Notes: generated by a model not told the origin, from the sequence alone. DNA of 64,000 bases from Macrostomum lignano (GCA_002269645.1 NIVC01001159.1:1-64000), one strand, 5' to 3'; numbered from the stretch's first letter, positions 1 through 62,050 are shown. Numbers and translations are program-made.

Positions 1-700
1 GCGAGCGAGGGTAATCGGCCTAGACGAAGAAGTGCAACTACTCTGGGCAGAGGGACGTTTCGGAATGTCTAATCCGACGCAGCTGTGAAATACCCTGCTG
101 TACCACTTACCCCTGGTAGGTTCTGCAACCTATGCTCAGAGCGAGTGCTGAACATCGCGCGTTAGAATTCGGTGAGCGATCGCAGCTTGTGCTCGTCAAG
201 GAAAATGACACTGAATGTCTGGTGTACACCGAGCGAATGTCGAAGAACGGGAGAGTTGGTTTGCACAAGGCACAACGTTGAGCTGAAACAACCAGGATCT
301 ATTCGAATGCGACCCAGACAAATGTGTCATCACGATGTATAAGACCTACGTTCGTCACCGGCCGGAGCAATTCGGACTCAAGGGTCACTCTGCGTTCTAT
401 CTGACACCGATCAAGGCGCCGACATCTGATATATGGTATCGTATCAACCAATGGGTGTGCATACGATTGAAAACGTCGTGAAGAATCTGTTCTCTGGCAA
501 GCGATTTGAAGCCGGCACTACGACCGGACCTATCACGAACAGTAGTCTGCGTCGGACCTGCAAGACTAGGTTGGTGAAGGCGCATCAGTAAGGAAATAGC
601 AAGCCAGAAGACTGAAGATTACCGAAAAGGCTGACAGGTCCTACATCGACGTCCGTAGTCAGAGAAGACACATGTCGGCAGTACTATATGGAGAGAGCAC
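1..700 (+). mobile_element. Degenerate Crypton-type tyrosine recombinase (DUF3504 family) transposon relic, 5'-truncated by the window edge, with stops and frameshifts
   Basis: Hand translation across frames gives EEVQLLWAEGRFGMSNPTQL*NTLLYH / LRASAEHRALEFGERSQLVLVKENDTECLVYTERMSKNGRVGL / DPDKCVITMYKTYVRHRPEQ..SAFYLTPIKAPTSDIWY / QPMGVHTIENVVKNL..ITNSSLRRTCKTRLVKA / RSYIDVRSQRRHMSAVL. These blocks are collinear with the Crypton/ZMYM/KCTD1 YR domain as I recall it. Confidence 0.8.
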
Positions 701-1852
701 TGCCGCAGCCAAAACGAGCGGCGTGAGTGAGGTTGAAGAGCAATTGCCAAAGGCAACTCCAATATTTCCGGACCGCAGGCTTTGGCTCTAAGTCAACAAT
801 GGTCGCGCCCTGTACTAAACTTCTACGGGCCAACCACGATCAATTTCAGTTCCCCGACAAACAAGATGCAATAGTGATAGCAATAAAAATTGTAGACTAA
901 CGAACTAAAACAACTATAACTGACTAAACGCTTGTTTACCGTTTTAACGTTCAATAAATATACGTGTTTTTGTTTTACTATCAATTTTAAGTTTGTCTAT
1001 GGTAGCGGAGTTACCGCTACCAATAATCTCCGCGAGCTTAACACTAGGGACATAAGAAGGCGAACAGGCAAAGTTGATTAAATAATCCTTCACAAAGTTC
1101 CTTCCTAAAGTGACCTCGAAGAGCTGAAACTTGCTTAAGGCCTGGTGGTGCTTCTGACTTGGGATTGTGAAAGCATTCCAGCATGCCGAAAGGAATTGAT
1201 CAGATCAATAAGATCTGCACAGCTACGCTGGTATGCTGCCACCAGCTTTGCTACTAAAATACCGCAGCTATTTTTTCCTCTCGCTCCCCTCTACCCCTTC
1301 TCACGGGAGCAGGGGTTGAAACGTGGCAATGGAGAGAGGAAAGGAGAGAGAGCCCGAGACTGCTAGGGCCAGCTGAGACCCTGACGTCCAAATAGGCGAT
1401 CGCGGCGAGAAGAAATCGATTATTCTGATCACCCGCATATTTCGGCTTCTTGCCTCGGTCTGAGCAGCCCTTTCAGCCAGCCCCCCCCCCTCCCCAAAGT
1501 GCGTCAGACCTAGGCAGCCAAGCTGTTCAGCCTAAGAGTCGCACAAGCCTTCTGCCTCCCGCGGTGTTTTATGCGCACAGAGCTCGTACCGACTCCGTTA
1601 ACAACCCCCGCCTCTCTCCTCTCTAGACGCCTGTTGTTTGGCAGGGAACGCGCCCAAATTAGCTTTGACAACCAGCTCGATAGTTAGCTTATTCCGTCAA
1701 TAAAAGCTAGAAGCGTTACGCAGAGAGGCGCGACCAACTTTGATACAGGATTAGCGATTCTTCAACAACAGACACAGGCTATTAACAGTTTTCTAAGGAA
1801 AACTTCAAAAAAACTTTGAAGCAGAGAGCGAAGTTGCTGCAATTGTATAATC

Positions 1853-1921
1853 ATGACAAGTCAGCAGCCGCAGTCATATCCGAATCCTAGGCCGCTGAGC
1901 TATAACCAGTTTCAGCAACAA

Positions 1922-1953
<32 letters not shown>

Positions 1954-4672
1954 ACGTCAGCCTCCGCCAGTGCCAAAGAAGCCGTCAATTCGAGAGCGTC
2001 CTCCGCATCAACACGAAGACAACGGGTTCGGTCAAAGCCAACAACCGCCGCCTCATCAGCACCAACATCAGGACCCACAGCGTTTGAAGAACTCCACCCT
2101 GAGGGACGAACATCCAAACGGCACCCAGCCAGTGACGTCACCTTGGCTCAATAAGCAGTTGCAGCAAGAGAATGGTGGCGCTGAGAACGGTACTAGTTAC
2201 GCTTCTCAAGCAGCTAGACGCTCTCACCAGCCCCATGAGTCTGAGCTAGACGATCTGAAAACGGAGAACCGTGCTCAAAGCCGCGAGCTGGACACAAATC
2301 GATACATTGAACGCGAAATGAATCGCAAGCTGAAAATAGCGGACGATGCCTACATGCTGAGGCACCTGATCAAGGACAAGGAGAGACAAATCAGCAACCA
2401 GGAGAAAGTCATCGCCGACCTCACGGAGGACAATGCAAGGCTTGGTGAAGACATTGCTGACAAAGAGCGCATGATATTTCAGCTGCAGTCAGAAGTAGAC
2501 AACCTGGATCGAGTCATTGTCGCTAAGAATGCACTGAAGGAGGCTGAAAGATTGCAGGCGGTTAGCGAGGAGCTAGACAGGACCAAAGATGAACTGGCAA
2601 GCATCGAGTTGGAGGTTGATGGCGCCAAATCTGAGTTAAAAAGTCTGCAAAACCAGCTAGCGAGAAAGGAGAGAGAGGTAAGAGCAAAAAATGAGCAGAT
2701 TGAGAACCTAAACCGCGAACTTGTTGAAGCTAAGAGCTCCATCGCTAGTGCGGAGAACGAAAAAGCGGTGTCGGACAGTCACTATCGAACAGCCGAGCGC
2801 GAGAACAAGGCGCTTAAAGAGCAGGTGGACAAGCTCGCTGACTACCGCGAACGATGTCGAAACCTTGAAGAAGAGAACGCCTATATTTCTGAAGCTGTGC
2901 GAGCACTGGAAGCTAAAGTGTTCCATCTTGAGACACTTAAACGAGACAAGGAGACCCTTGAGGAACTAGTGCATGATCTGAAAATGGCCTTAAAGGACAA
3001 AAATAAAGTTTTAAAGGATCGACGAGACTTGCTAGTTGAGACCCAGCAGCTCAAGGACATGTTGCGAGAAAAGTCCACAGATGAACAGGGCCTGCAGCAG
3101 GAGTTGGGGAAGCTCAAGGATGTTCTTAACGAGCTTGAGCGTGAGAATGACTTCTACCGCGATCTTGAGACTGACTTTCACAAAATTAAGAAGCGCTACG
3201 AAGACCTAGAGCGAGACAAGTTCAAGAACGAGCTGCTTGTTGCAAAGCTGAGGCCAAAAGTTGAGCGCTTGCAAAAACGCTGCAAGGAGAAGGACGACCT
3301 GATTCGACGCCTGGCTAACGAGCTTCGCGGAGGTGGGGAGCGCTTGCCGAGGGAGCTGCTGCAGGAGGCGGATCAGAATCAGAGGAAAACTGTAGATGAC
3401 TATGTTGATCCAATCGACTACCTGGTCAACCCGGACGACACGCCGCTCTCAGAGCAGATCGTCGCAAAGTCACAGGGTCGACCCAGATCCAGTGACCAGG
3501 CACCGCTTTCACCACTGTCGCAATCGGAGCAGCAGCAGCAAAAACAGCCACAGAAGCAGCCACAAAAACAGCCTTATTACTCACCTGCCTATGAAGATCC
3601 TCCAGCGTCGCCAAAAGCCGCATACGAGCCGCGCGCTGCCACACAATACCAGCAACAACAGAAGCCGCAGCAGCAGAAGCCTGAGAGTGATTACCCAAAT
3701 TACGCTAATAATCGTGATCCACATCAACACCAGCAACCGGAAGATCCAATTAAACCTCAGTACCAGTCTCATCCGCAGCAACAGCAACCGACACGTGACG
3801 ATTCAAATGACTATCCATCACTTCGCGCCTCGCGACAGCCGCAAAATCATCCCGCTGACGATCCGTACTCGAGTCCCTATAGTCCAGCAGCTGCGGCGTA
3901 CCCTGTGCAGCCCGAACCAGTGCGACAGCGGGGCCGTTCGCCACCACAGACCAGACCTACTGCTGCCAGGTTGAGTCGCGCCGACATTGAGCCCACAAGA
4001 AATCGGCCGACACCTCGGCTGCTCGATCCGCCGATGAACGTACGCATTAGCCGCGTCCTTGGCGACGGCAGCATCATGCTGGAGTGGGAAGCGCCGCAGC
4101 TGGACAATCTGGACCGGAACCAAGGCGTTGTGGTTGCTGGCTACAGAGTGTTCGTGAATGGTGTCGAGGAGCAGACCGTGGTGAGCTGCCGCCTAACCAA
4201 GTCGCTCATTCCGAAGACTTCACTTGGCGCTCTCGTCTCACTGGGCGTTCAGACATTCGGCTACGATGGTGAAACATCGGACAAGATTGAAATACCGGCA
4301 GGCGATGCCGCTAAAGGTCGCAGTCCGGGCAGGGACGACGCCCCCATAGGCCGGCCAAGCAGCGGGCCTATGGATCCATATTACTCTTCGCCGGCGCCCA
4401 AGTATCAGTCACAGCAGTCACCGCCGCAGTTTTCACCGTCACATCTGCAGCCTCATGAGGAGCCACAGCAGCAACAGGGTGCAAAGCGACGCGCTGCTAG
4501 AGACTACCGACCGAGTGAAGAATCACCATCCGCTTTTCCCTCTTATGAACTTGAGCTGCGCCGCGGCGACGATGTTACGACGTTCGGTCCGATGCGCCCC
4601 GACGGAATGTATAACGCTGAGGTGAATGGGCACAGGGGTCTGGTGCCTGGCCAGCTGCTGGAATTGAACTGA
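1853..4672 (+). CDS. RIMBP: Intronless RIMS-binding-protein-like protein: Q/P-rich N-terminus, long coiled coil, one FN3 domain, one C-terminal SH3 (939 aa)
   Basis: Uninterrupted ORF. FN3-like segment at about 4028-4290 (PPMNVRI..IMLEWEAP..VAGYRVFVNG..VQTFGYDGETSD). RIM-BP-type SH3 at about 4484-4669 (ARDYRPSEESP..ELELRRGDDVTTFGPMRPDGMYNAEVNGHRGLVP). Confidence 0.8.
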
Positions 4673-7600
4673 TTCAGTCGATGCTGATGACTAGTAGAAA
4701 ATTATAAGCGTTTTGATGAGCTGTTTGCAGTGAACATCAAGATAGATCATTTTGAGCAGTTGGTACCAATCAAACCATTTGAATTCGTTTTTATGTACGC
4801 AGTACTTTATAATTACAGTTGTTGCAACGCAAAGAAAGATCACCAGAAAGCTCTCTACGATCTTCCATCTCATTTGCAATCTGCATCATCGATTAATTTG
4901 CTAATGCGAAGAAGAAAAACTTTACTCCAAGATTTCTGGACTTCATTAATATTAATTAAATTTCGAATTTGTGCCATTGTACAACTTTTCACTATTGTGG
5001 AATAAGCGAAACTCCTGCAATACCTTCTGAACTGGATCCAGTTCGCAAAACTTTCTCCATGCAGTCGAATTTTCGTTTCTTTGAATAATTAATTTTTCTT
5101 TGCGTTTTTAACTTTTCGATTTCTTTGCGGCTGTTTTGACATATTTTCAAATTCAAAGAAACAGATGTTTACTGTTCTCTTACGAGTATTACGGCTTTTT
5201 TGTTTGCCTTCTGTGAAGGCTAAATTGTTTTACTTATCGCAATATAAAGCTAATAAGAATTAATTCATACTTATTGAGGTAATTTGTTAAAGTAAAAGTA
5301 TGCTTTTAAGGCTGGTTCACACCTCTGACAATTGAGACATCAAATGTCAAAACAAAGCAACCGTGAAATGTCTTCTTATTGGAGAAGGCAGGGTAATGGT
5401 ATCGGAAGAAAACTCTTTTGTGTTATTTGTATCTAAAGACAATATTTTTATTTACTGATTTCTATGATGACCAGCCAACGGCTGATTAGAATACTTTGTT
5501 CAAAATATATCGAGCATGTTATCGGTTCCTGAAAAGCGTTGACTTCTTGGCTTTGACTCGTTTGTTTTCTATTGGCGAGTCATTAACTAAAAAAGCCTAA
5601 ATTTTCAACTCATTGTTTACAAAAAATACCGAAACCGCTTATTGCCAATAAGCTAATCATTAAGGTTAACTGAAAGGAACATATGCGCTATATATTACGT
5701 TGCAGATGTCTTTTTAGGACAGCTGAGAACATGGTTGCGACCTTGTCGATTCATTCGATTTATTTATTTTACTGATCTCTCCAAAAAAATCCGCCTACTT
5801 TTCAGAATAGTAACAACATAAGCCCCGGATAGCGATGTCGCCCATATTCAAAACTACGGTTATGTATTTATGGACCTGTCGATAATTCTCGATCGTTACA
5901 TATGCATAGCTAATTGCTACCAGTAGAAAGCAAAATAAATGATGGAGAATTTGCGGAGCTACTTATTCAGACAAAATTAAAGCTATCTATATGTGGTAAA
6001 AATGAAACTTTCTAACGAAAATTTCGTTAACCTGGTAATTAAAAATATTTTAACTACACAATCATGCAATTAATCAACGCTAGCTATTAAAAAACTGAAC
6101 GCTTTTTAACGAACAAGCGCACAATTGTGGCAAGTCCTTAACAACTACATTTTCAGCTTATTTTTCATATTAATGTTCTCCAAACAGTAGAGAAACGCAA
6201 ATTTTGTAATAATTAATAGTGTTAATTATTTTAAAATATAAATTTGCTCAAAACATCACACTGTTTCCTTTGGAAATGGAAACCCCATGGTCACGCATGC
6301 TACTTGCTTTCAGCACAACTGATCACATATATGTATGAGCATCATTCAGAAAGACACCATAAACTGCATATGTACTGCATTTTTTCCAACTGGAGGTTTC
6401 AATGCACACGAAATAATTGTATACCTGATTTTTTAATTAATAATGAGTTACCCGTGTACATGTACATGTGCATGTACCGTAATTCAAATTTTACACAATC
6501 AACTCTACTTTAGTAGGTAAAATTTGTAGTTGACTGGTATAACTAAAAACACTAGCATTTTAAGAACACAAACTATAATACATCTCGAAGAAATCCCGGT
6601 CTCCCCTGGTTTGTATTTATTTTAGTGAATGAAAATACACAAAAGACACAAATATTTCAATAAAACTGTAAGAGAAGGTATAGGAAAAGAGAAAAACTAA
6701 ATGATTCACAGTAAAGTCGGCAAGTGTAGTAAATATGACACAAAATTTGATAGTTATTAGCGATAAATTCCTTAATAAAATGGCGCGAAGAATTAAGACA
6801 AAGAATAAATCAGCAAGCCTGATAATAAAAGCTTGCTTAACACAGATGCGATGACAGCAACTCGACATGAGTTTTAGCAATTAGTGCTTTGGCGCCAAAA
6901 ATTTAAAGAAACCATCGGTTTCAAATACAATAGAGAAAATTATAAATAATTTGTTAAAAAGGGTGTTTTTGCTTTCTTTAATACGCGTTGGTAATTCTGC
7001 TCGATCATTGAACAATAGAAGCTAGGACTGACAAATAAAGTTTCGAATTTAAAGCAATATAACAATTCAGTTAAAAATAGCTTAATAAATATACATGGTT
7101 AGTAAAATAATGAAATTGTAGATAAAAAATGCGACAAAACGCAATTTTTTGCGCACACAGCAACGAACAGGAACAGTTTTGTCAAAAGACTGTCGCAAAG
7201 GAAATAGAAAGTTAATGAGGACATCAGCCAGACAAGATGCGTGGACAAATTTTACACCCTAAAACAAAATAACGTCACGGTTATTATATTAGGGAAAAAA
7301 ATAAAATAATTTAATGAAAAATTTATACCAGTCCAAATTACATGTAATTATTTTACTTAATGAAATAGTACAAATATAGTACAGAAACGATTACGAACAT
7401 GTACACAGACGTCACGGCACCACAAGATGAAATTATGTAACCTCCAAGCACTGTATACAAGGATTGCGTCGAACATCGAACAATACGAATGATATAGCCA
7501 TTGGATCAATTATTAAATAGGAAAATAAAAAGACAGTCACATCAGTGTTACAAAGTTCATTCACAACAGTGCTATGTGAATAATATATTGGAGTATTGAA

Positions 7601-7829: not shown

Positions 7830-37464
<29,635 letters not shown>

Positions 37465-37552
37465 GACTGCTGCAGCTGCTGCTGTTTGGCGACTTGGCGA
37501 TTCTGAGCTGCGTCTGCGGATAATCGGGTAGTTGGGACTCGAATAATGCAAT

Positions 37553-39051: not shown

Positions 39052-42000
39052 TCTTCTTCACTCTCATGGCTCTCTCTTCTTCACTCTCACAGCTCTCTCT
39101 TCTTCAATCTCACGGCTATCTCTTCTTCACTCTCACAGCTCTCTCTTCTTCACTCTCATGGCTCTCTCTTCTTCACTCTCATGGCTCTCTCTTCTTCACT
39201 CTCATGGCTCTCTCTTCTTCACTCTCACAGCTCTCTCTTCTTCAATCTCACAGCTCTCTCTTCTTCACTCTCATGGCTCTCTCTTCTTCACTCTCATGGC
39301 TCTCTCTCCTTCACTCTCACAGCTCTCTCTTCTTCACTCTCACAGCTCTCTCTTCTTCACTCTCACAGCTCTCTCTTCTTCACTCTCACAGCTCTCTCTT
39401 CTTCACTCTCACAGCTCTCTCTTCTTCACTCTCATGGCTCTCTCTTCTTCACTCTCATGGCTCTCTCTTCTTCAATCTCACGGCTATCTCTTCTTCACTC
39501 TCATGGCTCTCTCTTCTTCACTCTCATGGCTCTCTCTTCTTCACTCTCATGGCTCTCTCTTCTTCACTCTCATGGCTCTCTCTTCTTCACTCTCATGGCT
39601 CTCTCTTCTTCACTCTCATGGCTCTCTCTTCTTCACTCTCACAGCTCTCTCTTCTTCACTCTCACAGCTCTCTCTTCTTCACTCTCATGGCTCTCTCTTC
39701 TTCACTCTCACAGCTCTCTCTTCTTCACTCTCACAGCTCTCTCTTCTTCACTCTCATGGCTCTCTCTTCTTCAATCTCACAGCTCTCTCTTCTTCACTCT
39801 CACAGCTCTCTCTTCTTCACTCTCACAGCTCTCTCTTCTTCACTCTCATGGCTCTCTCTTCGTCACTCTCACAGCTCTCTCTTCTTCACTCTCATGGCTC
39901 TCTCTTCGTCACTCTCACAGCTCTCTCTTCTTCACTCTCATGGCTCTCTCTTCGTCACTCTCACAGCTCTCTCTTCTTCACTCTCATGGCTCTCTCTTCT
40001 TCACTCTCATGGCTCTCTCTTCTTCACTCTCATGGCTCTCTCTTCTTCACTCTCATGGCTCTCTCTTCTTCACTCTCATGGCTCTCTCTCCTTCACTCTC
40101 ATGGCTCTCTCTTCTTCAATCTCACGGCTATCTCTTCTTCACTCTCATGGCTCTCTCTTCGTCACTCTCACAGCTCTCTCTTCTTTACTCTCATGGCTCT
40201 CTCTTCTTCACTCTCATGGCTCTCTCTTCTTCACTCTCATGGCTCTCTCTTCTTCACTCTCATGGCTCTCTCTTCTTCACTCTCACAGCTCTCTCTTCTT
40301 CACTCTCACAGCTCTCTCTTCTTCACTCTCATGGCTCTCTCTTCTTCACTCTCACAGCTCTCTCTTCTTCACTCTCACAGCTCTCTCTTCTTCACTCTCA
40401 CAGCTCTCTCTTCTTCACTCTCATGGCTCTCTCTTCTTCACTCTCATGGCTCTCTCTTCTTCACTCTCACAGCTCTCTCTCCTTCACTCTCACAGCTCTC
40501 TCTTCTTCACTCTCATGGCTCTCTCTTCTTCACTCTCATGGCTCTCTCTTCTTTACTCTCATGGCTCTCTCTTCTTCACTCTCACAGCTCTCTCTTCTTC
40601 ACTCTCACAGCTCTCTCTCCTTCACTCTCACAGCTCTCTCTCCTTCACTCTCACAGCTCTCTCTTCGTCACTCTCACAGCTCTCTCTTCTTCACTCTCAT
40701 GGCTCTCTCTTCGTCACTCTCACAGCTCTCTCTTCTTCACTCTCACAGCTCTCTCTTCTTCACTCTCATGGCTCTCTCTTCTTCACTCTCATGGCTCTCT
40801 CTTCTTCACTCTCATGGCTATCTCTTCTTCACTCTCATGGCTCTCTCTTCTTCACTCTCATGGCTCTCTCTTCGTCACTCTCACAGCTCTCTCTTCTTCA
40901 CTCTCATGGCTCTCTCTTCGTCACTCTCACAGCTCTCTCTTCTTCACTCTCATGGCTCTCTCTTCTTCACTCTCATGGCTCTCTCTTCTTCACTCTCATG
41001 GCTCTCTCTTCTTCACTCTCATGGCTCTCTCTTCTTCACTCTCATGGCTCTCTCTTCTTCACTCTCATGGCTCTCTCTTCTTCACTCTCATGGCTCTCTC
41101 TTCTTCACTCTCACAGCTCTCTCTTCTTCACTCTCACAGCTCTCTCTTCTTCACTCTCATGGCTCTCTCTTCTTCACTCTCACAGCTCTCTCTTCTTCAC
41201 TCTCACAGCTCTCTCTTCTTCACTCTCATGGCTCTCTCTTCTTCAATCTCACAGCTCTCTCTTCTTCACTCTCACAGCTCTCTCTTCTTCACTCTCACAG
41301 CTCTCTCTTCTTCACTCTCATGGCTCTCTCTTCGTCACTCTCACAGCTCTCTCTTCTTCACTCTCATGGCTCTCTCTTCGTCACTCTCACAGCTCTCTCT
41401 TCTTCACTCTCATGGCTCTCTCTTCGTCACTCTCACAGCTCTCTCTTCTTCACTCTCATGGCTCTCTCTTCTTCACTCTCATGGCTCTCTCTTCTTCACT
41501 CTCATGGCTCTCTCTTCTTCACTCTCATGGCTCTCTCTTCTTCACTCTCATGGCTCTCTCTCCTTCACTCTCATGGCTCTCTCTTCTTCAATCTCACGGC
41601 TATCTCTTCTTCACTCTCATGGCTCTCTCTTCGTCACTCTCACAGCTCTCTCTTCTTTACTCTCATGGCTCTCTCTTCTTCACTCTCATGGCTCTCTCTT
41701 CTTCACTCTCATGGCTCTCTCTCCTTCACTCTCATGGCTCTCTCTTCTTCACTCTCACAGCTCTCTCTTCTTCACTCTCACAGCTCTCTCTTCTTCACTC
41801 TCATGGCTCTCTCTTCTTCACTCTCACAGCTCTCTCTTCTTCACTCTCACAGCTCTCTCTTCTTCACTCTCACAGCTCTCTCTTCTTCACTCTCATGGCT
41901 CTCTCTTCTTCACTCTCATGGCTCTCTCTTCTTCACTCTCACAGCTCTCTCTCCTTCACTCTCACAGCTCTCTCTTCTTCACTCTCATGGCTCTCTCTTC

Positions 42001-42567
42001 TTCACTCTCATGGCTCTCTCTTCTTTACTCTCATGGCTCTCTCTTCTTCACTCTCACAGCTCTCTCTTCTTCACTCTCACAGCTCTCTCTCCTTCACTCT
42101 CACAGCTCTCTCTCCTTCACTCTCACAGCTCTCTCTTCGTCACTCTCACAGCTCTCTCTTCTTCACTCTCATGGCTCTCTCTTCGTCACTCTCACAGCTC
42201 TCTCTTCTTCACTCTCACAGCTCTCTCTTCTTCACTCTCATGGCTCTCTCTTCTTCACTCTCATGGCTCTCTCTTCTTCACTCTCATGGCTATCTCTTCT
42301 TCACTCTCATGGCTCTCTCTTCTTCACTCTCATGGCTCTCTCTTCGTCACTCTCACAGCTCTCTCTTCTTCACTCTCATGGCTCTCTCTTCGTCACTCTC
42401 ACAGCTCTCTCTTCTTCACTCTCATGGCTCTCTCTTCTTCACTCTCATGGCTCTCTCTTCTTCACTCTCATGGCTCTCTCTTCTTCACTCTCATGGCTCT
42501 CTCTTCTTCACTCTCATGGCTCTCTCTTCTTCACTCTCATGGCTCTCTCTTCTTCACTCTCATGGCT
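39052..42567. repeat. 23-bp pyrimidine-rich satellite (CTCTCATGGCTCTCTCTTCTTCA), about 150 units, with a 1472-bp higher-order duplication
   Basis: Rare variants recur at an offset of exactly 1472. Confidence 0.95.
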
Positions 42568-43242
42568 CTTTTGTTCCCTCTCCTTATCTAATATCTTCGC
42601 TCTCACCTCTCTCTCATCTCTGCTCTCACGCACTCAATTTTACCCCTCTTATCCCATTATCTCTCTTAAAAACTGTAGCTCATCCTCATCTATCTCAACC
42701 CCCTCAGTCTCCCCCCACATCCCTGGCGCCTGGCAAGCAGAGCTGTGAAAACCACAAGATGGCTCACGAGGCTGGACTATACAGCGGCTTCACTGGGCTC
42801 TCCGGGGACGCGGGGCATCAGCTCTGGCATTTCAAAATGCCGATAATAATATGCTGTTGCTTTATACAGTGAGCCATCTCTCTGTTTTGCTGATACACCA
42901 GTACACTGAGCCGACTCTGGATGGATTTGAGCCTACTTTTCGTGATTCATCACATGGAGCAAAGTTTCTCATTTTCTGTAGCAATCACTGCTTTTTACAT
43001 TTTTTACACTTTACTTCAAATGCCATTGTTTAAAACTCTATGACTGAGTCTGGGAAAAGACTGCCAAATCTCAGCATCTGGAATGGACAGTCGCAGGGGA
43101 AAATTACGGAATACAACTGTCTATGGCCAGGCTCGATTCCAAGTGCAGTCGCATTATTTTGGGGCTAAATTGGAATCTCGGCTTGGGCCAATCCCCAAGG
43201 CACAGGGAAGTGAACATGCTTAGCGATTAAGGTAAAGTTAGG

Positions 43243-50870: not shown

Positions 50871-50982
50871 TCAGACATTTATCTCATCGAAAAACTCTTG
50901 ACAAGCGGCATAGGCTCCGGTGAGGAAAAACGTTCGGTCCTGGTTAATCCTCTCTGCCAACCGGGACTGCAGAGCCTGGCAA
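50871..50982 (-). CDS. KNL1: KNL1-like exon 11 (terminal)
   Basis: ttccag | [36 protein letters not shown]. Confidence 0.65.
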
Positions 50983-51446
50983 CTGGAATTAATGACAATT
51001 ATGATTTATTATTATGTTGTTGAAAATATTATGATCTACCATTAGAACTATGATCAATCATGAGTCACAATGACCCAGTGACTGGTTACAGCATGGTGCT
51101 CAATCATGAGTCACCATGACCCAGTGACTGGTTACAGCATGGTGCTCAATCATGAGTCACCATGACCCAAGCCGCACAGCAACTCACTCCACCAAGTCGA
51201 ACAGTCCTCCGACAGCCCACTGGGTGACGGCCACGCTAAAATCCTTGTGATGAGACTCCTCGGTTGCGAGGCCGGCAGAGTCCGAACCGGAGGCGGAGAA
51301 AAACCGATTGAAGTCTGGCAGGGAGATTCGAACCGACACGCGCCGGAGGGCTGCGGCAGCTCCAGTGCGGCTCATTGCCACGAATGACAGGCTGGCGGAG
51401 TGAGTGGGATTCTCTGGCGCTGAATGGCATTCCGGGTGTCTGCATT

Positions 51447-51477
<31 letters not shown>

Positions 51478-51538
51478 GTGTCTTCGTCTTTTGTGACTGT
51501 CTTTCTGTCTGTCTATCTGTGTCTTCGTCTGTTGTGAC

Positions 51539-51573
<35 letters not shown>

Positions 51574-51769
51574 GTCTTCGTCTGTTGTGACTGTCTGTCT
51601 GTCTGTCTGTCTGTCTATCTGTGTCTTCGTCTGTTGTGACTGTCTGTCTGTCTGTCTGTCTGTGTCTTCGTCTGTTGTGACTGTCTGTCTGTCTGTCCGT
51701 CTGTCTGTCTGTCTATCTGTCTTCGTCTGTTGTGACTGTCTGTCTGTCTGTGTCTTCGTCTGTTGTGAC

Positions 51770-51806
<37 letters not shown>

Positions 51807-51843
51807 GTGTCTTCGTCTGTTGTGACTGTCTGTCTGTCTGTCC

Positions 51844-51885
<42 letters not shown>

Positions 51886-52022
51886 GTCTCCGTCTGTTGT
51901 GACTATCTGTCTGTCTGTTTGCCTGCCTGTCTTGTCCGTCCGTATCGAACGAGCTTGGAGACCGTTGAGAGTTTCGATTTGCTTTCTGTCGTTGTCGCAT
52001 CGAGGCTGCAGCAGCTGATCAC

Positions 52023-52103
<81 letters not shown>

Positions 52104-55100
52104 ACTATCTATCTATCCATCCATCTATCTATATATCTATCTAACTATCTATCATTGTTTAGTCCTGCTTTAAAGCCTGTGCTCTAAGATTACGAACTTA
52201 CAGACCAGTACAAGTCACAGATACTACAATAATAAGATAGGCCACTCAGGCAATTAAAACAGCTGTCAACTTTCAGTTCACTAGCAAATAAGAATACATC
52301 AGCTATTTTATATAAAAGGCAATATAGCTCGTAATAAGAATTGGGGCGTGGCGGGTTGTGTGAAAAGGCGAGTTTGGAGGGTTTAGACTGGAGGGTTAGA
52401 GCCAATAAATGAGCCTTGACTATAAAAATATATTAAATACTTCTGTTTAACTTACTACTCAACTGAAAGTAGCTTACACGCAAATAAGATGAGCGGCCCA
52501 TCCAGTTATTCCAGTATCTGTGGTACAAGCTAGCATTTTCTGTGGAATATGAAAACAACCGAGTGTGCTTACAACTACTACAGACAATAATTCAGAACTC
52601 ACTCAACCGCGGTCTCGTCGAGACATTGCAGCTTGGCCAGGCAGCAGGCCTGAGTCTGCCTGAGTCGCAGAAACTCCAAAAGCAACAGAAAAGCCGGCTT
52701 AACAAGGCTGTAGGCCCGCTGCAGTGTGAGGTATCAATGGATAGTAGATGTGGGGTTTAAAAATGTGACAAGACAGTTATTACTCAAATACAAAATATCT
52801 AATAACAGTTATTACCCGTTCAAACTCGGACAGCGGCATATTGGGGCAGCAGTAGCCAAGGGAGTCCGTGACAAACTTTGCTGTGGACTTGAACAGCGGC
52901 ACCAGCTGAGCGTACGGCCCCGTGCATCCGCCTGCGGTAGGGCGGTTTTTCAAGTCATCAATTATCTGCGTGCTCCCTTATTATAGAATAGAAGAATTCT
53001 AATTTTCACCACATTTTATCACATTCATCCGCCCTATAATATCACCTTTATCTGCCCCCTAGAATCACCTTCATCCGCCCTCTAATCACCTTCATTTGAC
53101 CTCCAATCACCTTCATCCGCCCTTTTATCATCTACAACATCACCTTCATTCCCCATCCCCAAATAACCTTCATCCTCCCTCTTATCACCTGTATCCGCTC
53201 TCTAATCACCTTCATCCGCCCTCTAATCCCCTTCATCCGCTCTCTAATCACCTTCCTCTAAAATCGCTGCCATCCGCCCTCTAGAATCGCTGCCATCCGC
53301 CCTCTAAAATCACTGCCATCCGCCCTCTAGAATCGCTGCAGAATCGCTGCCATCCGCCCTCTAGAATCGCTGCCATCCGCCCTCTAGAATCGCTGCCATC
53401 CGCCCTCTAGAATCGCTGCAGAATCGCTGCCATCCGCCCGGCAGAATCGCTGCCATCCACCCTCTAGAATCGCTGCAGAATCGCTGCCATCCGCCCGGCA
53501 GAATCGCTGCCATGCAATCCTCACCTTCCCACACGGAGCAGGAGAAGGTCTGCAGTCGAAGTTCATCAGCAGATTCCAGATTCCCACCGTGAACCTGACT
53601 GCGGTTGGCACCTGTAGCATCTTCATCCTGCCTGTTAGGTGTCTGTCCATCACCGTCATCAGTCTCCATTGGCTGCAGCAGTTTGCAGTGAACCAGCAAT
53701 CGGCTGTGCAGGTATTTCAGAGTCACACGCGGCGGAGACTCAGTCACAGCGTACTGGACTGTGTAGAAGCTGTTGGGTGTTGGCGTTGGCTATTGGTATG
53801 GGTTGATTGGCAAATGCATGAGGTAACAAAAGTGCATCTAGCTCGTACAGAGGCCAACAGGTGAGCAGTGACAGAAGCCTAAAATCACAGGTGAGCAGTG
53901 ACAGAAGCCTAAAATCACAGGTGAGCAGTGACAGAAGCCTAAAATCACAGGTGAGCAGTGACAGAAGACTAAAATCACAGGTGAGCAGTGACAGAAGACT
54001 AAAATCACAGGTGAGAATTGACAGATGCCTAAAATCACAGGTGAGAATTTACAGATGCCTAAAATCACAGGTGAGAATTGACAGATGCCTAAAATCACAG
54101 GTGAGAATTTACAGATGCCTAAAATCACAGGTGAGAATTGACAGATGCCTAAAATCACAGGTGAGCAGTGACAGAAGCCTAAAATCACAGGTGAGCAGTG
54201 ACAGAAGACTAAAATCACAGGTGAGCAGTGACAGAAGCCTAAAATCACAGGTGAGAATTGACAGGTGAGCAGTGACAGAAGACTAAAATCACAGGTGAGC
54301 AGTGACAGAAGACTAAAATCACAGGTGAGCAGTGACAGAAGACTAAAATCACAGGTGAGAATTGACAGATGCCTAAAATCACAGGTGAGCAGTGACAGAT
54401 GCCTAAAATCACAGGTGAGCAGTGAAAGAAGCCTAAAATCACAGGTGAGCAGTGACAGAAGCCTAAAATCACAGGTGAGCAGTGACAGAAGCCTAAAATC
54501 ACAGGTGAGCATTAGGTAGGCAGAGGCGCCCAAACTTACGCGCAGTGAGTCAGGAAACTGAAATCAATCCTGGAAGAAGCGGATTCGGCAACAAAGGAAT
54601 CAGCAGCGGCGGTGCAGCAGGACGAGTCCAGACGCTGGCGCCGGCCTGGCTGGTGCAGAGACTGCTCAACCATGGCCTCAGCTTGAGCAGAGTACAGAGC
54701 GGCAGCTATGAGGCACTTGCTCTTGTCCATGAGGCACTGTCGCATGCGGCGGCGTACTGAAATATTTTTTTAGTATATGTACATCAATAAATATTCGGTA
54801 TGCGAGGCCGTAGCCCAAGAGCGCCAACTCCCAAGGCACAGTGTAGTGTGCATGCCGAACGATAAATCAAGTCAAGGGGCCGCTGTACACTCCCGTGTGA
54901 GTGTGTGCCTGTGCGTATGACTGCGTACGTATCCGCGCGCTGATTCTATAACTCGAGCGACTCTGGCACGCCTCAGGCAATAAAACATATCTAAAAATTC
55001 TCATTACTCACAGTTAACTAATCGCTGCTTCCTTTGAGTTCTCGGATCGAGGTACCGAGCTCGAACCCCGACTAGAATCTGCTTCATCAGCTTGTCGGCA

Positions 55101-58100
55101 ATCTCGCTGGCGGCCTCGCCAAGCCGACGACGGTAAATGGCAAGCAGGGCGGACTCGTCCAGCTGCTCATCCTGCTGCTGCACACTGCTCAGAGCCACGT
55201 CAGCCTGACAGCGCTCCAGCTCCAGTTTCAGACGGTTCAGTAGGATGTTCTTGAACCTGGGCGGCAGAGGTTGGCACAGCTGCCGCAGGCTGGCTATCAG
55301 CTCTGCGCCAACCCCAGCCTGCTCAGCTTCGAAGCCGGCAAAGAAGCTGAAGCTGGCCAGCCGCATCAGCTCATCTACGGTGCCGCTGGATTTCGAGTAA
55401 TTCCCTGCCGCCAACTGACCGCACCGGAGCGGCAGCAGCGGTGACGCGTCCAGGGAGTCGGCGGCGCCGGCGCCCGAGGCTTCGTGCTGCTGGCGCAAAA
55501 ACGACGGGGTGGCGACGAAGTTGCCGGACAAAGACCTGAGGTGGCTCGGCGTGGCCACTTGGGAGGACGGCGACAAAGACTTGAGGTGGCTGGGCGTGGC
55601 GACTTGGGCGGACGGCGACAAAGACTTGAGGTGGCTGGGCGTGGCGACTTGGGCGGACGGCGACAAAGACTTCAGGTGGCTGGGCGTGGCGACTTGGGCG
55701 GACGGCGACAAAGACTTCAGGTGGCTGGGCGTGGCGACTTGGTTGTGCGGCGCCAAGGGCTCGAGACTTCGTCTGTTAAGTTCGATTGGGTTAAAAGAAT
55801 GCGCGACGTGACATCTCGTTATCGTGGTTATCAGCAGCTCGAGGCTTAGATAAATTGAAGCTGCAATAGAAAATTCTAATATCCAAGATTTCTGAATGCC
55901 AGTCCCAGAATGAGCCCCCAGTCCCTAATCCCAGTGTCCCCAGATCCGGAATCCCAGTGTCCCCAGATCCGGAATCCCAGTGTCCCCAGATCCGGAATCC
56001 CAGTGTCCCCAGATCCGGAATCCCAGTGTCCCCAGATCCGGAATCCCAGTGTCCCCAGATCCGGAATCCCAGTGTCCCCAGATCCGGAATCCCAGTGTCC
56101 CCAGATCCGGAATCCCAGTGTCCCCAGATCCGGAATCCCAGTGTCCCCAGATCCGGAGTCCCAGTGCCCCAGATCCAAAATCCCAGTGTCCCCAGATCCG
56201 GAATCCCAGTGTCCCCAGATCCAAAATCCTAGTGTCCCCAGATCTCGGATCCCGAGTCGATCCAGAATCCGAGTCCCCGCAGATCCCGAGTCCCCAGATC
56301 CCGAACCCCTAGAGTCCCCAGATCCCAAATCCGAGTCCCCAGATCCTGAACCCCCAGAGTCCCCAGATCCCGAATCCTAAAGTCTACATAACCAATCGAA
56401 TAGTGCAGTAACACAATCACAACAATAGAAGCTTCTCACCCAGAGCTCAGCGACATGTGAGTAGCGGCATTAGCCGGAGCTGAGCACGCAGCTGTGAAGC
56501 GAATAATTTTAGTGGACGCGGAGGGTGGCGACTCGTGGCCGGCGTCCAGCTGCATGCTTTCGCCGCTGTCTTGGCCAGCTGTCATTGTCGGCGGATCATC
56601 GACACAGTAAGTGGCGTTCGCTTGTTGAACTGGCGGCGAATCTACCAGCTTTTTCTGATTTGCTGCTGCAGCAGGCTGGGCGGCCTCGACCTCCACTGGA
56701 TCGGAGCCCGAGCTGCCAGCGCTGCCCGGCACTGCTGGAAATGCCAGTTTTTTAATTATAGATAAAAATTTTCGCATTTGAGTAGAAATTGTTTCAAAAA
56801 GGAGTTGCAATTTTAAGAAACAATGTTTTCCGTTTTGTTTTCCAAGAAACGATGTTTTCCGTTTTATTTTCTAAGAAATAATGTTTTCCGTTGTGTTTTC
56901 TAAGAAACGATGTTTTCCGTTTTGTTTTCTAAGAAACGATGTTTTCATTTTGTTTTCTAAGAAACAATATTTTCCGATTTGTTTTTTAAGAGACGATGTT
57001 TTCACTTGAAGTTTTGTTTTCTTAGAAACGATGCTTAAGATTTGATCTCGAAGAAACGATGTTTCCCGTTTTGTTTTGTAAGAAATGAAGTTTTGTATTT
57101 TGGTTTCTAAGAAACGATGTTTCCTGTTTTGTTTTCTAAGAAACGATGCTTGACATTTCTAAGAAATGAAATTTTCCGTTTCTGTTCGATATCCTGTTAT
57201 GCTTTCGAAGAAACAAAACTATCTGTTTTTTCGAGAATTAAAATTTTCCGTTTCACTTAAGTTATCGTAGCATCGTAGCGGTCAAGGAGCTAGCGAACCG
57301 TTTTGAAAATGCGCTGATTGCCTAAGTCAGGAAGCCATGGCCAGTATACCAGAAAATAATATTTCAATAATATACCCACAACTTACAGTCAGACGCCTGA
57401 GGAGAGCCCTGCTGAGCAGCAGCCACAATGCTCATGCTGTCAGAGTCGCCAAACAGAGACCGCTCGATCTGGGCCAATATGGACGAGTCGGCGGCGGGAG
57501 GCGCCCGACGAGGTGACACCGCCGTGCAGGTGGCGTGGAACAGCTCTTCCAGTTCGCGGCATCGCTCCAGCACCGAGTCATTGCCTGTGTTGCCATTGGA
57601 TACAGTTTGAACTGGGGGCTTCTGCTTTGGCTCAGGCTGCTGCTGCTCAGGCTGAGGCTCGTCTGGCGATATAATTAGCGACTCGTCATCATATCCTGCC
57701 AGGTGACTGACCGTGAATCTGCGTTTGAAATTCATACTGAGATGTGATGATCGCATTGAGTGAGTAGAACACATGGGGTTGTATTGGGCTGAAATAAGGC
57801 TTATTGCTGCAAACCAAAGGTCACGGATATGGTCATTGGGTCATGCTAGAGACAGGGGGGTCAGTGGGACTTATACCGTAATAGTGCAGTTACGGTCATA
57901 AACTGAGGCCAGGTGGGTCATATATTGAGGTCAGGTGGTCTTTTACTGACGTCAGGGGGTCATATACTGAGGCCAGGTGGGTCGTATATTGAGGTCAGCC
58001 GGTCAGGGAGGTCATATACTGAGATCAGGTGGGTCATATATTGAGGTCAGGGAGGTCATATACTGAGATCAGGTGGGTCATATATTGAGGTCAGGGAGGT

Positions 58101-60602
58101 CATATACTGAGATCAGGTGGGTCATATATTGAGGTCAGGGAGGTCATATACTGAGATCAGGTGGGTCATATATTGAGGTCAGGGAGGTCATATACTGAGA
58201 TCAGGTGGGTCATAAACTGAGGTCAGGTGGGTCATATACTGCGATCAGGTGGGTCATACACTGCGATCAGGTGGGTCGTATATTGAGGTCAGGGAGGTCA
58301 TATACTGAGATCAGGTGGGTCATAAACTGAGGCCAGGTGGGTCATATACTGCGATCAGGTGGGTCATATATTGAGGTCAGGGAGGTCATATACTGAGATC
58401 AGGTGGGTCATAAACTGAGGCCAGGTGGGTCATATACTGCGATCAGGTGGGTCATACACTGCGATCAGGTGGGTCGTATATTGAGGTCAGGGAGGTCATA
58501 TACTGAGATCAGGTGGGTCATAAACTGAGGCCAGGTGGGTCATATACTGCGATCAGGTGGGTCATGCACTGCGATCAGGTGGGTCGTATATTGAAGTCAG
58601 GAGGTCATGATACTGAGGTCAGAGGGGTCATATACAGAGGTCAGGGAGTCACGCTGATAGCTGGAGTCATTTTGAGGCTAATGGGTCATGCTGGAGCTAA
58701 GCAGGTCACACTGAGGCCACACTCACGATGAGGCCAATAAATAATGAAAGCACAATGACCGGTTAACTGAGGCCTGCAGCCCCAAATTGCAGTAAAGCAA
58801 ATAACTACCTTGAAGACGGCTGCCCCAGCTGATGCTGATTGCAGAAATGCTGGCTGACGGTGGCCGCGGCCGAGGACGACGAGGTGATCAACGTCATGCT
58901 GCTGCCACTTGACGAGAAGCCAGCAGCAGCGGCACCGGTCGTGGCGGCGGCGGCGGACACAGCGGCGGTGGCGCAGCTGCTGGCAGCGAATGCGGTCACA
59001 GCAGCGACCATCTTCAAGGACTCCGAGCTGCTCGTGTCGGAGTAGTTTGGCATAGGCAGGATCCGCTCAGCCAGCTCGTGATGCAGCAGCTGGTGCATCT
59101 GGCCAATCAGCTGACTGGCGCAGCGCTGCATCCGCAGCTGCCGGGTGGCCTCGCCTCCATCGTCCTGACTGAAGTCGTCGTCTCCGTCGCCGACAACCTC
59201 GTTGTTGTCCTCGACGTCGGCATCGGCGAGCTGTGGAGCCTCGTCACCAGCTGCTGCCCGCTGGCTGTTGTCTGCGTCATCGCCGTGAGCGGCCAGATAG
59301 GCAGAGAAGTCGTCCTCGATGTTGGCGTCGGGACCTTCAGCGGTGATGTCGGATGGAACTTGCGGTTGCGGCACCGGCTGCGGCGGCGCAGCTGCCGATG
59401 ACATCGTGGTGATCTCCATAGCAACTGAGTCATAAAGGGTTCGATTCTCCGCCATTGCCGAAGCCTGAGCAGCCATTGAGACGCTGGCGGTGCCGTCCGC
59501 AGACTGCAGGGTGAGCATGTCGGACTCCTTGATGAATTCCTTCACTTTGTAGGTGCGAGCGAAGCTCACTCGCTTTGAGCGGCTGCCAGCGCCGCCGCCT
59601 CCGCAGCCGTCGTTGAAGTCGTCTGGTATGATGTCATCTTCGTTCAGTGTGCGCTTCAGGATCTGCGTTCAGCGGTGGGCATGAGGCGCATTTGTCTTCG
59701 TTTTCACTCTCACCTGCTTGTCTGCACCACTACCTGTCTGCTTGCCTGCATCTCTACCTGTCTGCTTCCCTGCACCTCTACCTGTCTGTTTCCCTGCACC
59801 TCTACCTGTCTGCTTCCCTGCACCTCTACCTGTCTGCCTGCTTCCCTGCACCTCTACCTGTCTGTTTCCCTGCACCTCTACCTGTCTGTTTCCCTGCACC
59901 TCTACCTGTCTGCTTCCCTGCACCTCTACCTGTCTGTTTCCCTGCACCTCTACCTGTCTGCTTCCCTGCACCTCTACCTGTCTGTTTCCCTGCACCTCTA
60001 CCTGTCTCTTCCCTGCACCTCTACCTGTCTGCTTCCCTGCACATCTACCTGTCTGTTTCCCTGCACCTCTACCTGTCTGCTTCCCTGCACCTCTACCTGT
60101 CTGTTTCCCTGCACCTCTACCTGTCTGCTTCCCTGCACCTCTACCTGTCTGTTTCCCTGCACCTCTACCTGTCTGCTTCCCTGCACCTCTACCTGTCTGC
60201 TTCCCTGCACCTCTACCTGTCTGTTTCCCTGCACCTCTACCTGTCTGCTTCCCTGCATCACTACCTGTCTGCTTCCCCACTTGTCTACCTGTCTGCTTCC
60301 CCACTTGTCTACCTGTCTGCTTTCCCACTTGTCTACCTGTCTGCTTCCCTGCATCTATACCTGTCTGGTTCCCTGCATGACTACCTGTCTGGTTCCTTGC
60401 ATCACTACCTGTCTGGTTCCCTGCATCACTACCTGTCTACTTACCTGCATCTCTCTGCTTCCCCACTTGTCTACCTGTCTGCTTCCCCACTTGTCTACCT
60501 GCAATATATTGCAAAATATGTACATAGAAAAACACTTACAGATGATCTGGATCGCTTCTGAGTGCGAGTCTTAGTTGTTGCATAAGGTACTAGATTTGAC
60601 AT
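50871..60602 (-). CDS. KNL1: Candidate kinetochore scaffold KNL1/Spc105-like protein, 11 exons, about 1104 aa
   Basis: Eleven GT-AG exons join in consistent phase (3315 nt including stop). N-terminal KRSRSS|ILK...[11 protein letters not shown], an AMEITT motif, a disordered middle, a helical/coiled-coil region, and a beta-alpha C-terminus resembling tandem RWD. Gene structure is well supported; orthology is inferred from motifs. Confidence 0.7.
51055..51168. repeat. 46-bp repeat, about 2.5 copies, KNL1-like intron 10
   Basis: CAATCATGAGTCACCATGACCCAGTGACTGGTTACAGCATGGTGCT. Confidence 0.8.
51188..51391 (-). CDS. KNL1: KNL1-like exon 10 (putative RWD-C)
   Basis: [31 protein letters not shown]...GGLFDLV | gtgagt. 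Confidence 0.65.
51445..52150. repeat. (TCTG)n composite repeat and (ATCT)n microsatellite, KNL1-like intron 9
   Basis: Direct reading. Confidence 0.9.
52603..52718 (-). CDS. KNL1: KNL1-like exon 9
   Basis: [38 protein letters not shown] | gtgagt. Confidence 0.65.
52816..52931 (-). CDS. KNL1: KNL1-like exon 8
   Basis: [38 protein letters not shown] | gtaata. Confidence 0.65.
53030..53515. repeat. 22-23-bp minisatellite (CTAGAATCGCTGCCATCCGCCCT and AATCACCTTCATCCGCCCTCT variants), KNL1-like intron 7
   Basis: Direct reading. Confidence 0.8.
53525..53769 (-). CDS. KNL1: KNL1-like exon 7 (putative RWD-N)
   Basis: [31 protein letters not shown]...FSCSVWE | gtgagg. Confidence 0.65.
53857..54512. 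repeat. 30-bp minisatellite (CAGGTGAGCAGTGACAGAAGCCTAAAATCA), about 22 copies, KNL1-like intron 6
   Basis: Direct reading. Confidence 0.95.
54540..54756 (-). CDS. KNL1: KNL1-like exon 6
   Basis: tttcag | [21 protein letters not shown]...FSFLTHC | gtaagt. Confidence 0.7.
54878..54940 (+). repeat. Dispersed repeat family, partial 5' copy
   Basis: CCGCTGTACACTCC.GTGTGA...CTGCGTACGTATCCGCGC is shared with copies 1 and 2. Confidence 0.55.
55012..55772 (-). CDS. KNL1: KNL1-like exon 5 (15-aa coding repeat plus helical region)
   Basis: [10 protein letters not shown]([15 protein letters not shown])n...[11 protein letters not shown]...QRKQRLVN | gtgagt. Confidence 0.8.
55915..56380. repeat. 23-bp minisatellite (CCCAGATCCGGAATCCCAGTGTC), KNL1-like intron 4
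   Basis: Direct reading. Confidence 0.9.
56440..56734 (-). CDS. KNL1: KNL1-like exon 4
   Basis: [15 protein letters not shown]...ESMQLD...MSLSS | gtgaga. Confidence 0.75.
56815..57200. repeat. Degenerate repeat of about 29 bp (AAGAAACGATGTTTTCCGTTTTGTTTTCT), KNL1-like intron 3
   Basis: Direct reading. Confidence 0.7.
57387..57718 (-). CDS. KNL1: KNL1-like exon 3
   Basis: [18 protein letters not shown]...QASD | gtaagt. Confidence 0.75.
57890..58620. repeat. 22-bp minisatellite with two alternating variants, KNL1-like intron 2
   Basis: GTCATATACTGAGATCAGGTGG / GTCATATATTGAGGTCAGGGAG. Confidence 0.9.
58809..59662 (-). CDS. KNL1: KNL1-like exon 2 (ILK, RVSF, MEIT)
   Basis: acgcag | [43 protein letters not shown]...; donor gtagtt. 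Confidence 0.8.
59705..60500. repeat. 24-bp minisatellite (CTTCCCTGCACCTCTACCTGTCTG) filling KNL1-like intron 1
   Basis: Period 24 read directly. Confidence 0.95.
60540..60602 (-). CDS. KNL1: KNL1-like exon 1
   Basis: [21 protein letters not shown] | gtaagt; too short for the ORF track. Confidence 0.7.
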
Positions 60603-62050
60603 CGCTGATTAATGTTTATCAGTGCTAAAAACAGTAATGAGAAATTTTGTCACTTAAGATTTTCTTTATCCAAGAGCAGTTAATAACAATGACATTGTTT
60701 TTGTCAGACAATATTATATATAGAAAAATAAAGCATATATTTAAGTTTTTTGTCAAAATCATAATGCCATTTGGCATAATGACATCAAATTTGACAATTT
60801 GTTATGCCATTTTCAATTTTGACATGCCATTGGCATAAAATGTAAAATAACACTTTGTGAGCCCATATTACTGTTTCCTTTCAAGGTAATACTTGAACAA
60901 GTTTAAAAGCAAAACTAAAATTTGGAATTGGGAATTTAGCATTGGCAATTTGGCAATGGCATAATGGCAAAAAATTGTTATGCCATTTTGGCATAAAAGC
61001 ATCAAAATCATTATGCTCTTTTTTAATTTTGATAGCATGCCTATGACACAAAAAACCTAGGCATATATTAATACAAAATCCAAATTAATAAAAAACAAAA
61101 AAACATGAAAATAGTTCTTAGACAAGACAAAAAAGCTTAGCTACTATATCAGCTTATAAAATAAGATATATAATAAACAGTTATGATATCAGTTGAGAAA
61201 ACTATATATGCCTAACCTTGGGAATCACATGGCCATTTCTATTGGCAATATACACATGTAAATTGCTATTGGCTATCATTTTACTTATTTTGTCTTGTGT
61301 GCTGCTAATAGAAACAGCCAAGTTAATTCTTAGGTTACAACCAAACATAGAGAAATCTCTATCATTAAGCAATAATGAAAATAAACTTAGTAAATTGTCT
61401 TATATATTCTGTTGTACTTTTGACTCTCAGGAAGGATGCGCCTACAAGGGTCAGAGTATGCAGGCCCATGTTGGCCTGCGTTAGGGCACGAGTGTATACA
61501 TGGGACCCTAAGTCTAGGCTCTGGGGTATCAGGATGCACCCAAGTGGCTGGCACACATGTAGGGACACTGATGTCAATCACCTTTAGCAGGGTATCAAGG
61601 TGCATGAGCTGGCATCTACATACAATGGGCTTAAAGTACAGGGTGGTCCCTGGCTGACTACCTAGCCTAGTCCCCCTTGGCCCTTAGTTGGCCTTAGGAC
61701 ACACAAACTGCCCCTGCTATAGCCCCCAAAATGAAAGAGACAAGGCAGTGACTTACTTCATGTACAGCTTGCCTTTGTGCATGCGGTCAATTAATTGCAG
61801 CTGAAGTCTGTTCACAGCTAGCAGACATATGGCTATGGCATAGGCATAGAAGTTCAAAGAAAATTGGTTGAGTTGTTTTTTGCTGAAATCGATCACACAC
61901 ACATGCACACACACAGACAGACCCTATTTGGTATATGGATAAGGGATAAAAAAGCAAAAAATTACATATTTCTTGGCCTATTATTGTTTGGCAGATTGAT
62001 ATGGGCATAGAAATTGTTTAAGTTTATTTTTTTATTAGAGGCAGGGGGTT

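Follow-up and report, generated by a model that had tools for sequence, protein, structure and literature searches.

A divergent flatworm gene with a KNL1-type PP1-docking module as candidate KNL1 orthologue of Macrostomum lignano

A KNL1-type N-terminus in an 11-exon gene of M. lignano

We analysed a 64,000-nucleotide stretch of the genome of the flatworm Macrostomum lignano (GCA_002269645.1, NIVC01001159.1:1-64000; hereafter "the window"), and found on its minus strand, at positions 60602-50871, a gene that probably encodes the M. lignano orthologue of KNL1 (also known as CASC5, Spc105, Spc7 or KNL-1). Judging from its sequence, we put the probability of this assignment at about three in four, with the protein being a very divergent member of this family of outer-kinetochore scaffolds. 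KNL1 acts as a hub through which microtubule attachment is coupled to the spindle checkpoint and to PP1-dependent silencing. The gene assembles from 11 exons, with GT-AG at every border, into a 3315-nt coding sequence for 1104 amino acids (aa) with a single terminal stop. A previous sequence-only reading of this DNA, which proposed a KNL1 identity, had joined open reading frame (ORF) fragments into an 1104-aa protein, and our 11 GT-AG exons reproduced a product of the same length.

The evidence for KNL1 is concentrated in the first 72 residues, where a basic stretch precedes a SILK-type PP1 docking motif, SSILK (aa 20-24, within KRSRSSILK, aa 16-24). Intron 1 splits this motif as SS|ILK, such that S20-S21 are encoded at 60545-60540 in exon 1 and the ILK codons at 59654-59662 in exon 2, all on the minus strand. 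A 27-residue spacer separates SSILK from an RVxF motif with a downstream VKEF extension (aa 51-69; 59519-59575, minus strand; RVSF at aa 52-55), which matches the metazoan KNL1 consensus RRVSFAxTxxVKEF in a hidden Markov model (HMM) alignment of 12 KNL1 proteins. This arrangement of basic patch, SSILK, spacer of ~30 residues and RRVSFAxTxxVKEF is that of known KNL1 proteins (human structures 8PPR, 8Q5H, 4NF9 and 6CZO; Spc105R; KNL-1; Spc105/Spc7). The positions are also close to those in human KNL1, with SILK at aa 21-24 versus 25-28 and RVSF at aa 52-55 versus 58-61 (the human sequence was checked at full length against 8ppr_K). Composition arithmetic gives a probability of ~2e-6 to 8e-6 per protein that a SILK-type motif lies within the first 60 aa with RV[ST]F 10-50 aa further on.

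Further parts follow in the order expected of KNL1. MEIT (aa 103-106; 59408-59419, minus strand) is the protein's sole MELT-type motif (M[ED][ILVM][ST]); SILK-type, RVxF-type and MELT-type motifs thus occur once each in the whole protein. From aa 107 to ~640 the sequence is of low complexity, being acidic, Ala/Ser-rich and Pro/Gln-rich, and the remaining ~460 aa (aa ~644-1104) are rich in hydrophobic residues, with long predicted helices and then alternating strand-like and helix-like segments at the end. A MELT-type motif downstream of the docking module, an extended centre of low complexity that includes a fast-changing tandem repeat, and a C-terminal region of hundreds of residues are all shared with KNL1, and the order of parts fits the criteria by which Tromer et al. 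(2015; PMC4558858) called KNL1 orthologues. The motifs named in the sequence-only reading, KRSRSSILK, a PP1-docking segment and MEIT, were all found (aa 16-24, 51-61 and 103-106). Its claim of a diagnostic KNL1 order held for the PP1 module, the MELT-type motif, the long repeat-bearing low-complexity region and the hydrophobic-rich C-terminus; its likening of the latter to a tandem RWD found no support, as described below.

We derived a profile HMM from N-terminal sequences of 12 accepted KNL1 proteins, none of them from a flatworm (human, Ciona, Saccoglossus, Branchiostoma, Drosophila, C. elegans, Brugia, Nematostella, Trichoplax, Amphimedon, Mnemiopsis and Monosiga; Knl1.fa in supplementary file 60 of van Hooff et al., 2017, PMC5579357). 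The profile matched aa 13-72 of the M. lignano protein with a score of 30.0 bits (P = 2.6e-11 for a single sequence, equivalent to an E of about 1e-6 for a proteome of ~5e4 proteins), or 32.3 bits when built on a MAFFT alignment (A2). Full shuffles of aa 1-120 (n = 5000) scored at most 8.6 bits. With SSILK and RVSF held fixed and their flanks shuffled, scores averaged 9.4 +/- 4.0 bits and 1 of 5000 shuffles reached 30 bits, indicating that ~20 of the 30 bits come from the context of the motifs, i.e. the upstream basic residues and the A-x-T-x-x-V-K-E-F extension. In leave-one-out comparisons, the accepted orthologues scored between 25.5 bits (Drosophila) and 58.1 bits, and the flatworm protein between 27.5 and 33.5 bits.

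The profile was also run against databases, and was specific for KNL1 in PDB. Among 177,635 PDB sequences, the highest scores were those of human KNL1 (8ppr_K, 69 bits; 6czo_B, 61 bits), followed by PPP1R3A and PPP1R3B peptides at 16-19 bits. Ten proteins in a collection of 5.8 billion matched at E <= 0.01; the four with functional names were all KNL1/CASC5, and the other six were uncharacterised, hypothetical or unnamed, four of them being nematode fragments. This search returned no M. lignano protein, not even the homeolog BOX15_Mlig000589g3, a sign that the word index has its limits. Used as a single-sequence query against PDB, the flatworm N-terminus did not find KNL1; the family profile alone detects the module. 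Membership of KNL1 at the N-terminus was judged by SSILK at aa 20-24, RVSF at aa 52-55 and the 30.0-bit profile score. By its sequence, the N-terminal PP1-docking module is a member-quality KNL1 match, statistically indistinguishable from the modules of accepted orthologues. The KNL1 reading of the N-terminus thus has statistical support, with 30 bits falling inside the leave-one-out range and well above the scores of other PP1 regulators in PDB.

The extended PP1-binding form (RVSFAD...VKEF) occurs in PPP1R3 proteins too, and convergence is conceivable. The gene could encode a lineage-specific PP1 targeting subunit that acquired a KNL1-like SILK-RVxF module by convergence or exon capture, with an orphan C-terminus and no kinetochore role. 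We consider this unlikely, though well short of negligible. It would account for the confinement of KNL1 similarity to aa 13-72, the PP1-binding module, and the partial match of PPP1R3A and PPP1R3B to the profile is consistent with PP1 binding constraining unrelated proteins. These glycogen-targeting subunits (6DNO, 5ZQV and 5ZT0) share with the M. lignano protein RVSF followed by a hydrophobic segment; however, their scores fall well short of the 30-32 bits seen here, which lie inside the accepted KNL1 range, they lack SILK, and they are defined by a CBM21 domain, of which Pfam finds no match in our protein. Inhibitor-2 (PPP1R2) and similar PP1 interactors have SILK N-terminal to an RVxF-type motif; the IPP-2 domain of inhibitor-2 combines SILK, RVxF-like and HYNE motifs. 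Inhibitor-2, which to our knowledge is present in PDB, was not among the PDB matches of the profile at E <= 10, and it differs from the M. lignano protein in architecture and length (~200 aa versus 1104 aa), with no IPP-2 match in Pfam. The module sits at the extreme N-terminus with a KNL1-like SILK-RVSF spacing, and MEIT, a low-complexity centre containing repeats and a C-terminus of matching size are KNL1-like as well; all of this argues against such a subunit.

If the protein is a KNL1 orthologue, established KNL1 biology suggests how it would act. PP1 would dock on SILK and RVSF, and phosphorylation by Aurora B of S21 (R-S-S21-I) and S54 (K-R-V-S54-F) would keep PP1 off unattached kinetochores; R19-x-S21-I22 appears to fit the Aurora-type R-x-S-hydrophobic pattern. 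MEIT is a candidate Mps1-phosphorylated docking site for Bub3-Bub1, whose recruitment would support checkpoint signalling; a later reversal would come from bound PP1. A Zwint-like protein would be the partner of the C-terminal region, which would also attach to the Mis12 complex by means of putative RWD-type domains.

A divergent flatworm KNL1 that had previously escaped detection is to be expected from the survey of van Hooff et al. (2017; PMC5579357), since its Knl1 file has 75 header lines naming Knl1, none of them from Schistosoma mansoni, the only flatworm surveyed, but Zwint-1, Nnf1, Bub3, MadBub, Mad1 and Mad2 are listed for that species. In full-text literature searches, no paper was found that connects KNL1 with Macrostomum or that names a KNL1 from a flatworm or planarian, and searches of papers and supplements for expression of Mlig000589 and Mlig013379 found nothing. 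A named candidate in M. lignano, a transgenic regeneration model amenable to RNA interference, would offer a handle on the kinetochore and checkpoint of neoblasts, and a seed sequence for orthologues in planarians and parasitic flatworms. The gain is one of annotation inside a well-known family, with no new mechanism or type of system.

The C-terminal region and the central repeat

Several observations weigh against a KNL1 identity, in addition to the occurrence of the extended PP1-binding form in PPP1R3 proteins. Across all C-terminal searches, we detected no sequence or profile similarity to any KNL1 beyond the first 72 residues. Pfam searches of the whole protein and of fragments at E <= 10 gave no match, including to Knl1_RWD_C and Spc7; phmmer against PDB found no KNL1 similarity; and phmmer and blastp comparisons with the human KNL1 C-terminus found nothing. 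An exhaustive HMMER (phmmer) search of aa 644-1104 against 1.84 billion representative sequences returned M. lignano itself only. Homologues of the human KNL1 C-terminus in the word-indexed collection came from amniotes only, and hhalign comparison with the amniote alignment gave a probability of 0.6%. With a broader metazoan profile (human, a second vertebrate, Ciona, Branchiostoma, Saccoglossus and Nematostella), hmmsearch gave -2.7 bits and hhalign a probability of 0.16%, and global alignment to this profile yielded nothing. The best local hhalign match paired human DDQAVFTFVYDTIQLTITF, from the first RWD strands, with aa 829-850 of the M. lignano protein, a position that colinearity predicts; the match is not significant. 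We also rejected a candidate equivalent of the conserved G-x-I-x-V-x-E-F-L block that lies ahead of the coiled coil in KNL1; its block HMM score was -1.4 bits.

Structure prediction likewise failed to connect the C-terminus to KNL1. AlphaFold2 was run without an alignment, KNL1 homologues being withheld because supplying them would be circular, and the models were poor, with a predicted local distance difference test score (pLDDT) of 38.7 for aa 644-1104 and 33.6 for aa 827-1104. Long helices were predicted for aa 647-870 (pLDDT 33-57), and this segment has no similarity to profiles of the KNL1 coiled coil, to which Zwint, Kre28 or Sos7 binds. In the model with pLDDT 33.6, the last 150 residues form a helix, three strands, a short helix, a fourth strand and two helices, which is the order of an RWD domain and, at this confidence, only a hint. 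Foldseek comparison of the aa 827-1104 model with PDB gave E >= 0.56 and template-modelling (TM) scores <= 0.19, with no KNL1 or RWD match; matches to the E2/UBC fold had a probability of 0.03 and were dismissed as noise. Because the input models were poor, the Foldseek result is meaningless.

The resemblance to a tandem RWD that the sequence-only reading had noted at the C-terminus is thus unsupported: the profiles are null, the models poor and the structural comparison without a meaningful match. The absence of any detectable relative of the C-terminal 460 aa outside M. lignano, and of any family or fold match, is what a PP1 targeting subunit with an orphan C-terminus would show. However, when we searched the C-termini of Drosophila Spc105R, Anopheles, C. 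elegans KNL-1 and Brugia with the same profile, scores were -0.9 to -2.8 bits and hhalign probabilities 0.1-0.2%, compared with -2.4 bits and 0.2% for the flatworm protein. Since these fast-evolving but accepted KNL1 C-termini, from fly, mosquito and nematodes, are equally undetectable, the negative result says little either way.

The M. lignano protein also differs from KNL1 in its length (1104 aa versus 2342 aa in human), in the lack of sequence similarity of its C-terminus to the KNL1 coiled coil or RWD domains, and in the centre of the protein. A scan of the whole protein for M[ED][ILVM][ST] found the single MEIT and no MELT array, a further point against the KNL1 assignment, and the protein contains no KI motifs. 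The centre instead carries a coding 45-bp tandem repeat (aa 526-600; 55527-55742, minus strand; 4.8 copies at 97% identity by Tandem Repeats Finder), which encodes five 15-aa units with TP and SP sites and without an acidic-hydrophobic-Thr core. Homeologous copies of the protein (BOX15_Mlig000589g3 and P0036) have seven units versus the five found here, so the coding exon has undergone recent in-frame expansion or contraction, and this difference in copy number suggests a resemblance to the fast repeat turnover reported for KNL1. The TP/SP array may be a lineage-specific phospho-docking array or drifting low-complexity sequence.

The single MELT-type motif, and the presence of a young, copy-number-variable TP/SP repeat where other KNL1 proteins have MELT arrays, would also fit a KNL1-derived gene that has kept PP1 recruitment at kinetochores and lost canonical checkpoint scaffolding, with the Bub1/Bub3 role moved to the TP/SP array or to another protein. 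We regard this as very improbable; Tromer et al. (2015; PMC4558858) report accepted KNL1 orthologues with one repeat, among them that of Spizellomyces. A more specific form of the KNL1 assignment, which we put forward as speculation and think rather doubtful, is a macrostomid KNL1 in which the copy-number-polymorphic 15-aa TP/SP array replaced the MELT array, Cdk1-type phosphorylation of the array would recruit checkpoint or polo-type factors, and the C-terminal anchor diverged beyond a recognisable RWD domain. If correct, an animal used as a stem-cell model would have a rewired KNL1.

Gene structure, existing annotation and homeologous copies

Exact-sequence look-up showed that our model, minus its initiator Met, is identical to GenBank PAA71514.1 (1103 aa; "hypothetical protein BOX15_Mlig013379g2, partial"). 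The sequence-only reading had described the gene as hidden and unannotated; a correct GenBank model already exists, and the functional name alone is missing. The GenBank gene set for M. lignano is a genome-guided, RNA-seq-based transcriptome (Wudarski et al., 2017; PMC5730564). Given that our model equals PAA71514.1 and that the gene set derives from this transcriptome, all ten splice junctions have transcript support.

The best database match for the assembled protein was BOX15_Mlig000589g3, a hypothetical protein of M. lignano, with 94% identity. Other contigs carry two more nearly identical copies, PAA51403.1 and PAA63912.1, which are homeologs of PAA71514.1. The M. lignano genome is neopolyploid, and near-identical homeologous loci are expected. 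One such locus (L001) is colinear with the window, with ~95-96% DNA identity outside repeats, and spans 14.9 kb versus 9.7 kb here, a difference that presumably reflects unequal lengths of minisatellite arrays. In the coordinates of L001, the flank ahead of the KNL1-like gene contains a Sema-domain gene call on the opposite strand (1-6915, minus strand).

Older UniProt/WormBase models join the gene to unrelated N-terminal sequence that is absent from the window. Two of these models (A0A1I8IP11 and A0A1I8INJ2) are named "BRCT domain-containing protein" and a third (A0A1I8IBA2) "Protein MGA2"; the BRCT and MGA2 names look like annotation artefacts. Such fusions to upstream sequence, together with the minisatellites that fill the introns, are what might be cited for a mis-joined or non-functional gene model. 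We give this explanation almost no weight: at least three loci, ~95-96% identical in DNA, share the same intact 11-exon frame, the annotation is RNA-seq-based, and all junctions are canonical.

The exons, all on the minus strand, divide the protein as follows. Exon 1 (60540-60602) begins at an ATG with an in-frame TAA 9 nt upstream, and ends in phase 0 ahead of GTAAGT. Exon 2 (58809-59662; aa 22-305) encodes the ILK of SILK, the RVSF module, MEIT, and acidic and Ala/Ser-rich low-complexity sequence. Exon 3 (57387-57718; aa 306-416) is followed by Ser/Pro/Ala-rich, low-complexity exon 4 (56440-56734; aa 417-514). Exon 5 (55012-55772; aa 515-768) contains the repeat array, after which the hydrophobic-rich, predicted-helical C-terminal region begins (~aa 644, ~55387). 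Exon 6 (54540-54756; aa 769-840) is helical by low-confidence prediction. Exon 7 (53525-53769; aa 841-922), the candidate first RWD, has strand-like FYTVQYAV and RVTLKYL segments and an acidic/Gly insert of ~35 aa; the best hhalign match, which is not significant, lies in this exon. Exon 8 (52816-52931; aa 923-961) completes the assembled model between this and exon 9 (52603-52718; aa 962-999), for which the low-confidence model predicts a long amphipathic helix. The same model predicts exon 10 (51188-51391; aa 1000-1067), the candidate second RWD, to be strand-rich, and places two terminal helices in exon 11 (50871-50982; aa 1068-1104), which ends with the TGA stop at 50873-50871.

Alternative boundaries were considered at two places. 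A second in-phase acceptor for exon 3 lies at 57736, 18 nt upstream of that used in the model; the added segment (57719-57736) would replace R306 by S followed by an additional MNFKRR. Although this acceptor is in phase, the GenBank models (PAA71514.1 and BOX15_Mlig000589g3) splice at 57718; we therefore rejected 57736 as the main acceptor, and it may produce an alternative isoform. Two candidate extra exons (~52539-52478 and ~52280-52200) have open frames but were rejected, being phase-incompatible and absent from the transcript-based models. Spliced-leader trans-splicing is common in M. lignano, and an acceptor-like TTTTAG site at 60625-60626, 22 nt upstream of the start codon, could be a trans-splice acceptor of this kind.

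Nearly every intron is packed with minisatellites, with periods of 4, 21-24, 29-30 and 44-46 bp and up to 31 copies. These stretches (59714-60501, 57894-58645, 56814-57253, 55916-56377, 53857-54511, 53017-53513, 51447-52153 and 51054-51169) give rise to many long spurious ORFs on both strands.

Other features of the window

An Rfam scan of the window gave no matches. On the plus strand, a single-exon ORF of 939 aa (1853-4672) has a long coiled coil and, by Pfam, a RIMBP2-like Ig domain and a C-terminal SH3 domain; these domains suggest a RIM-binding-protein-like gene. Minus-strand ORFs of exon size at 10696-11091, 22445-22807 and 37129-37551 encode RasGEF, RhoGEF (DH) and PH domains, and may belong to one or more large multi-exon genes for guanine-nucleotide exchange factors. 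Finally, a tandem array of ~3.8 kb at 39066-42872 is open in three frames on the plus strand, giving ORFs of 1136-1268 aa made up of LSSSLSQLSLLHSH-type units. GC skew is strongly negative across this array, which is almost certainly satellite DNA and not a gene.

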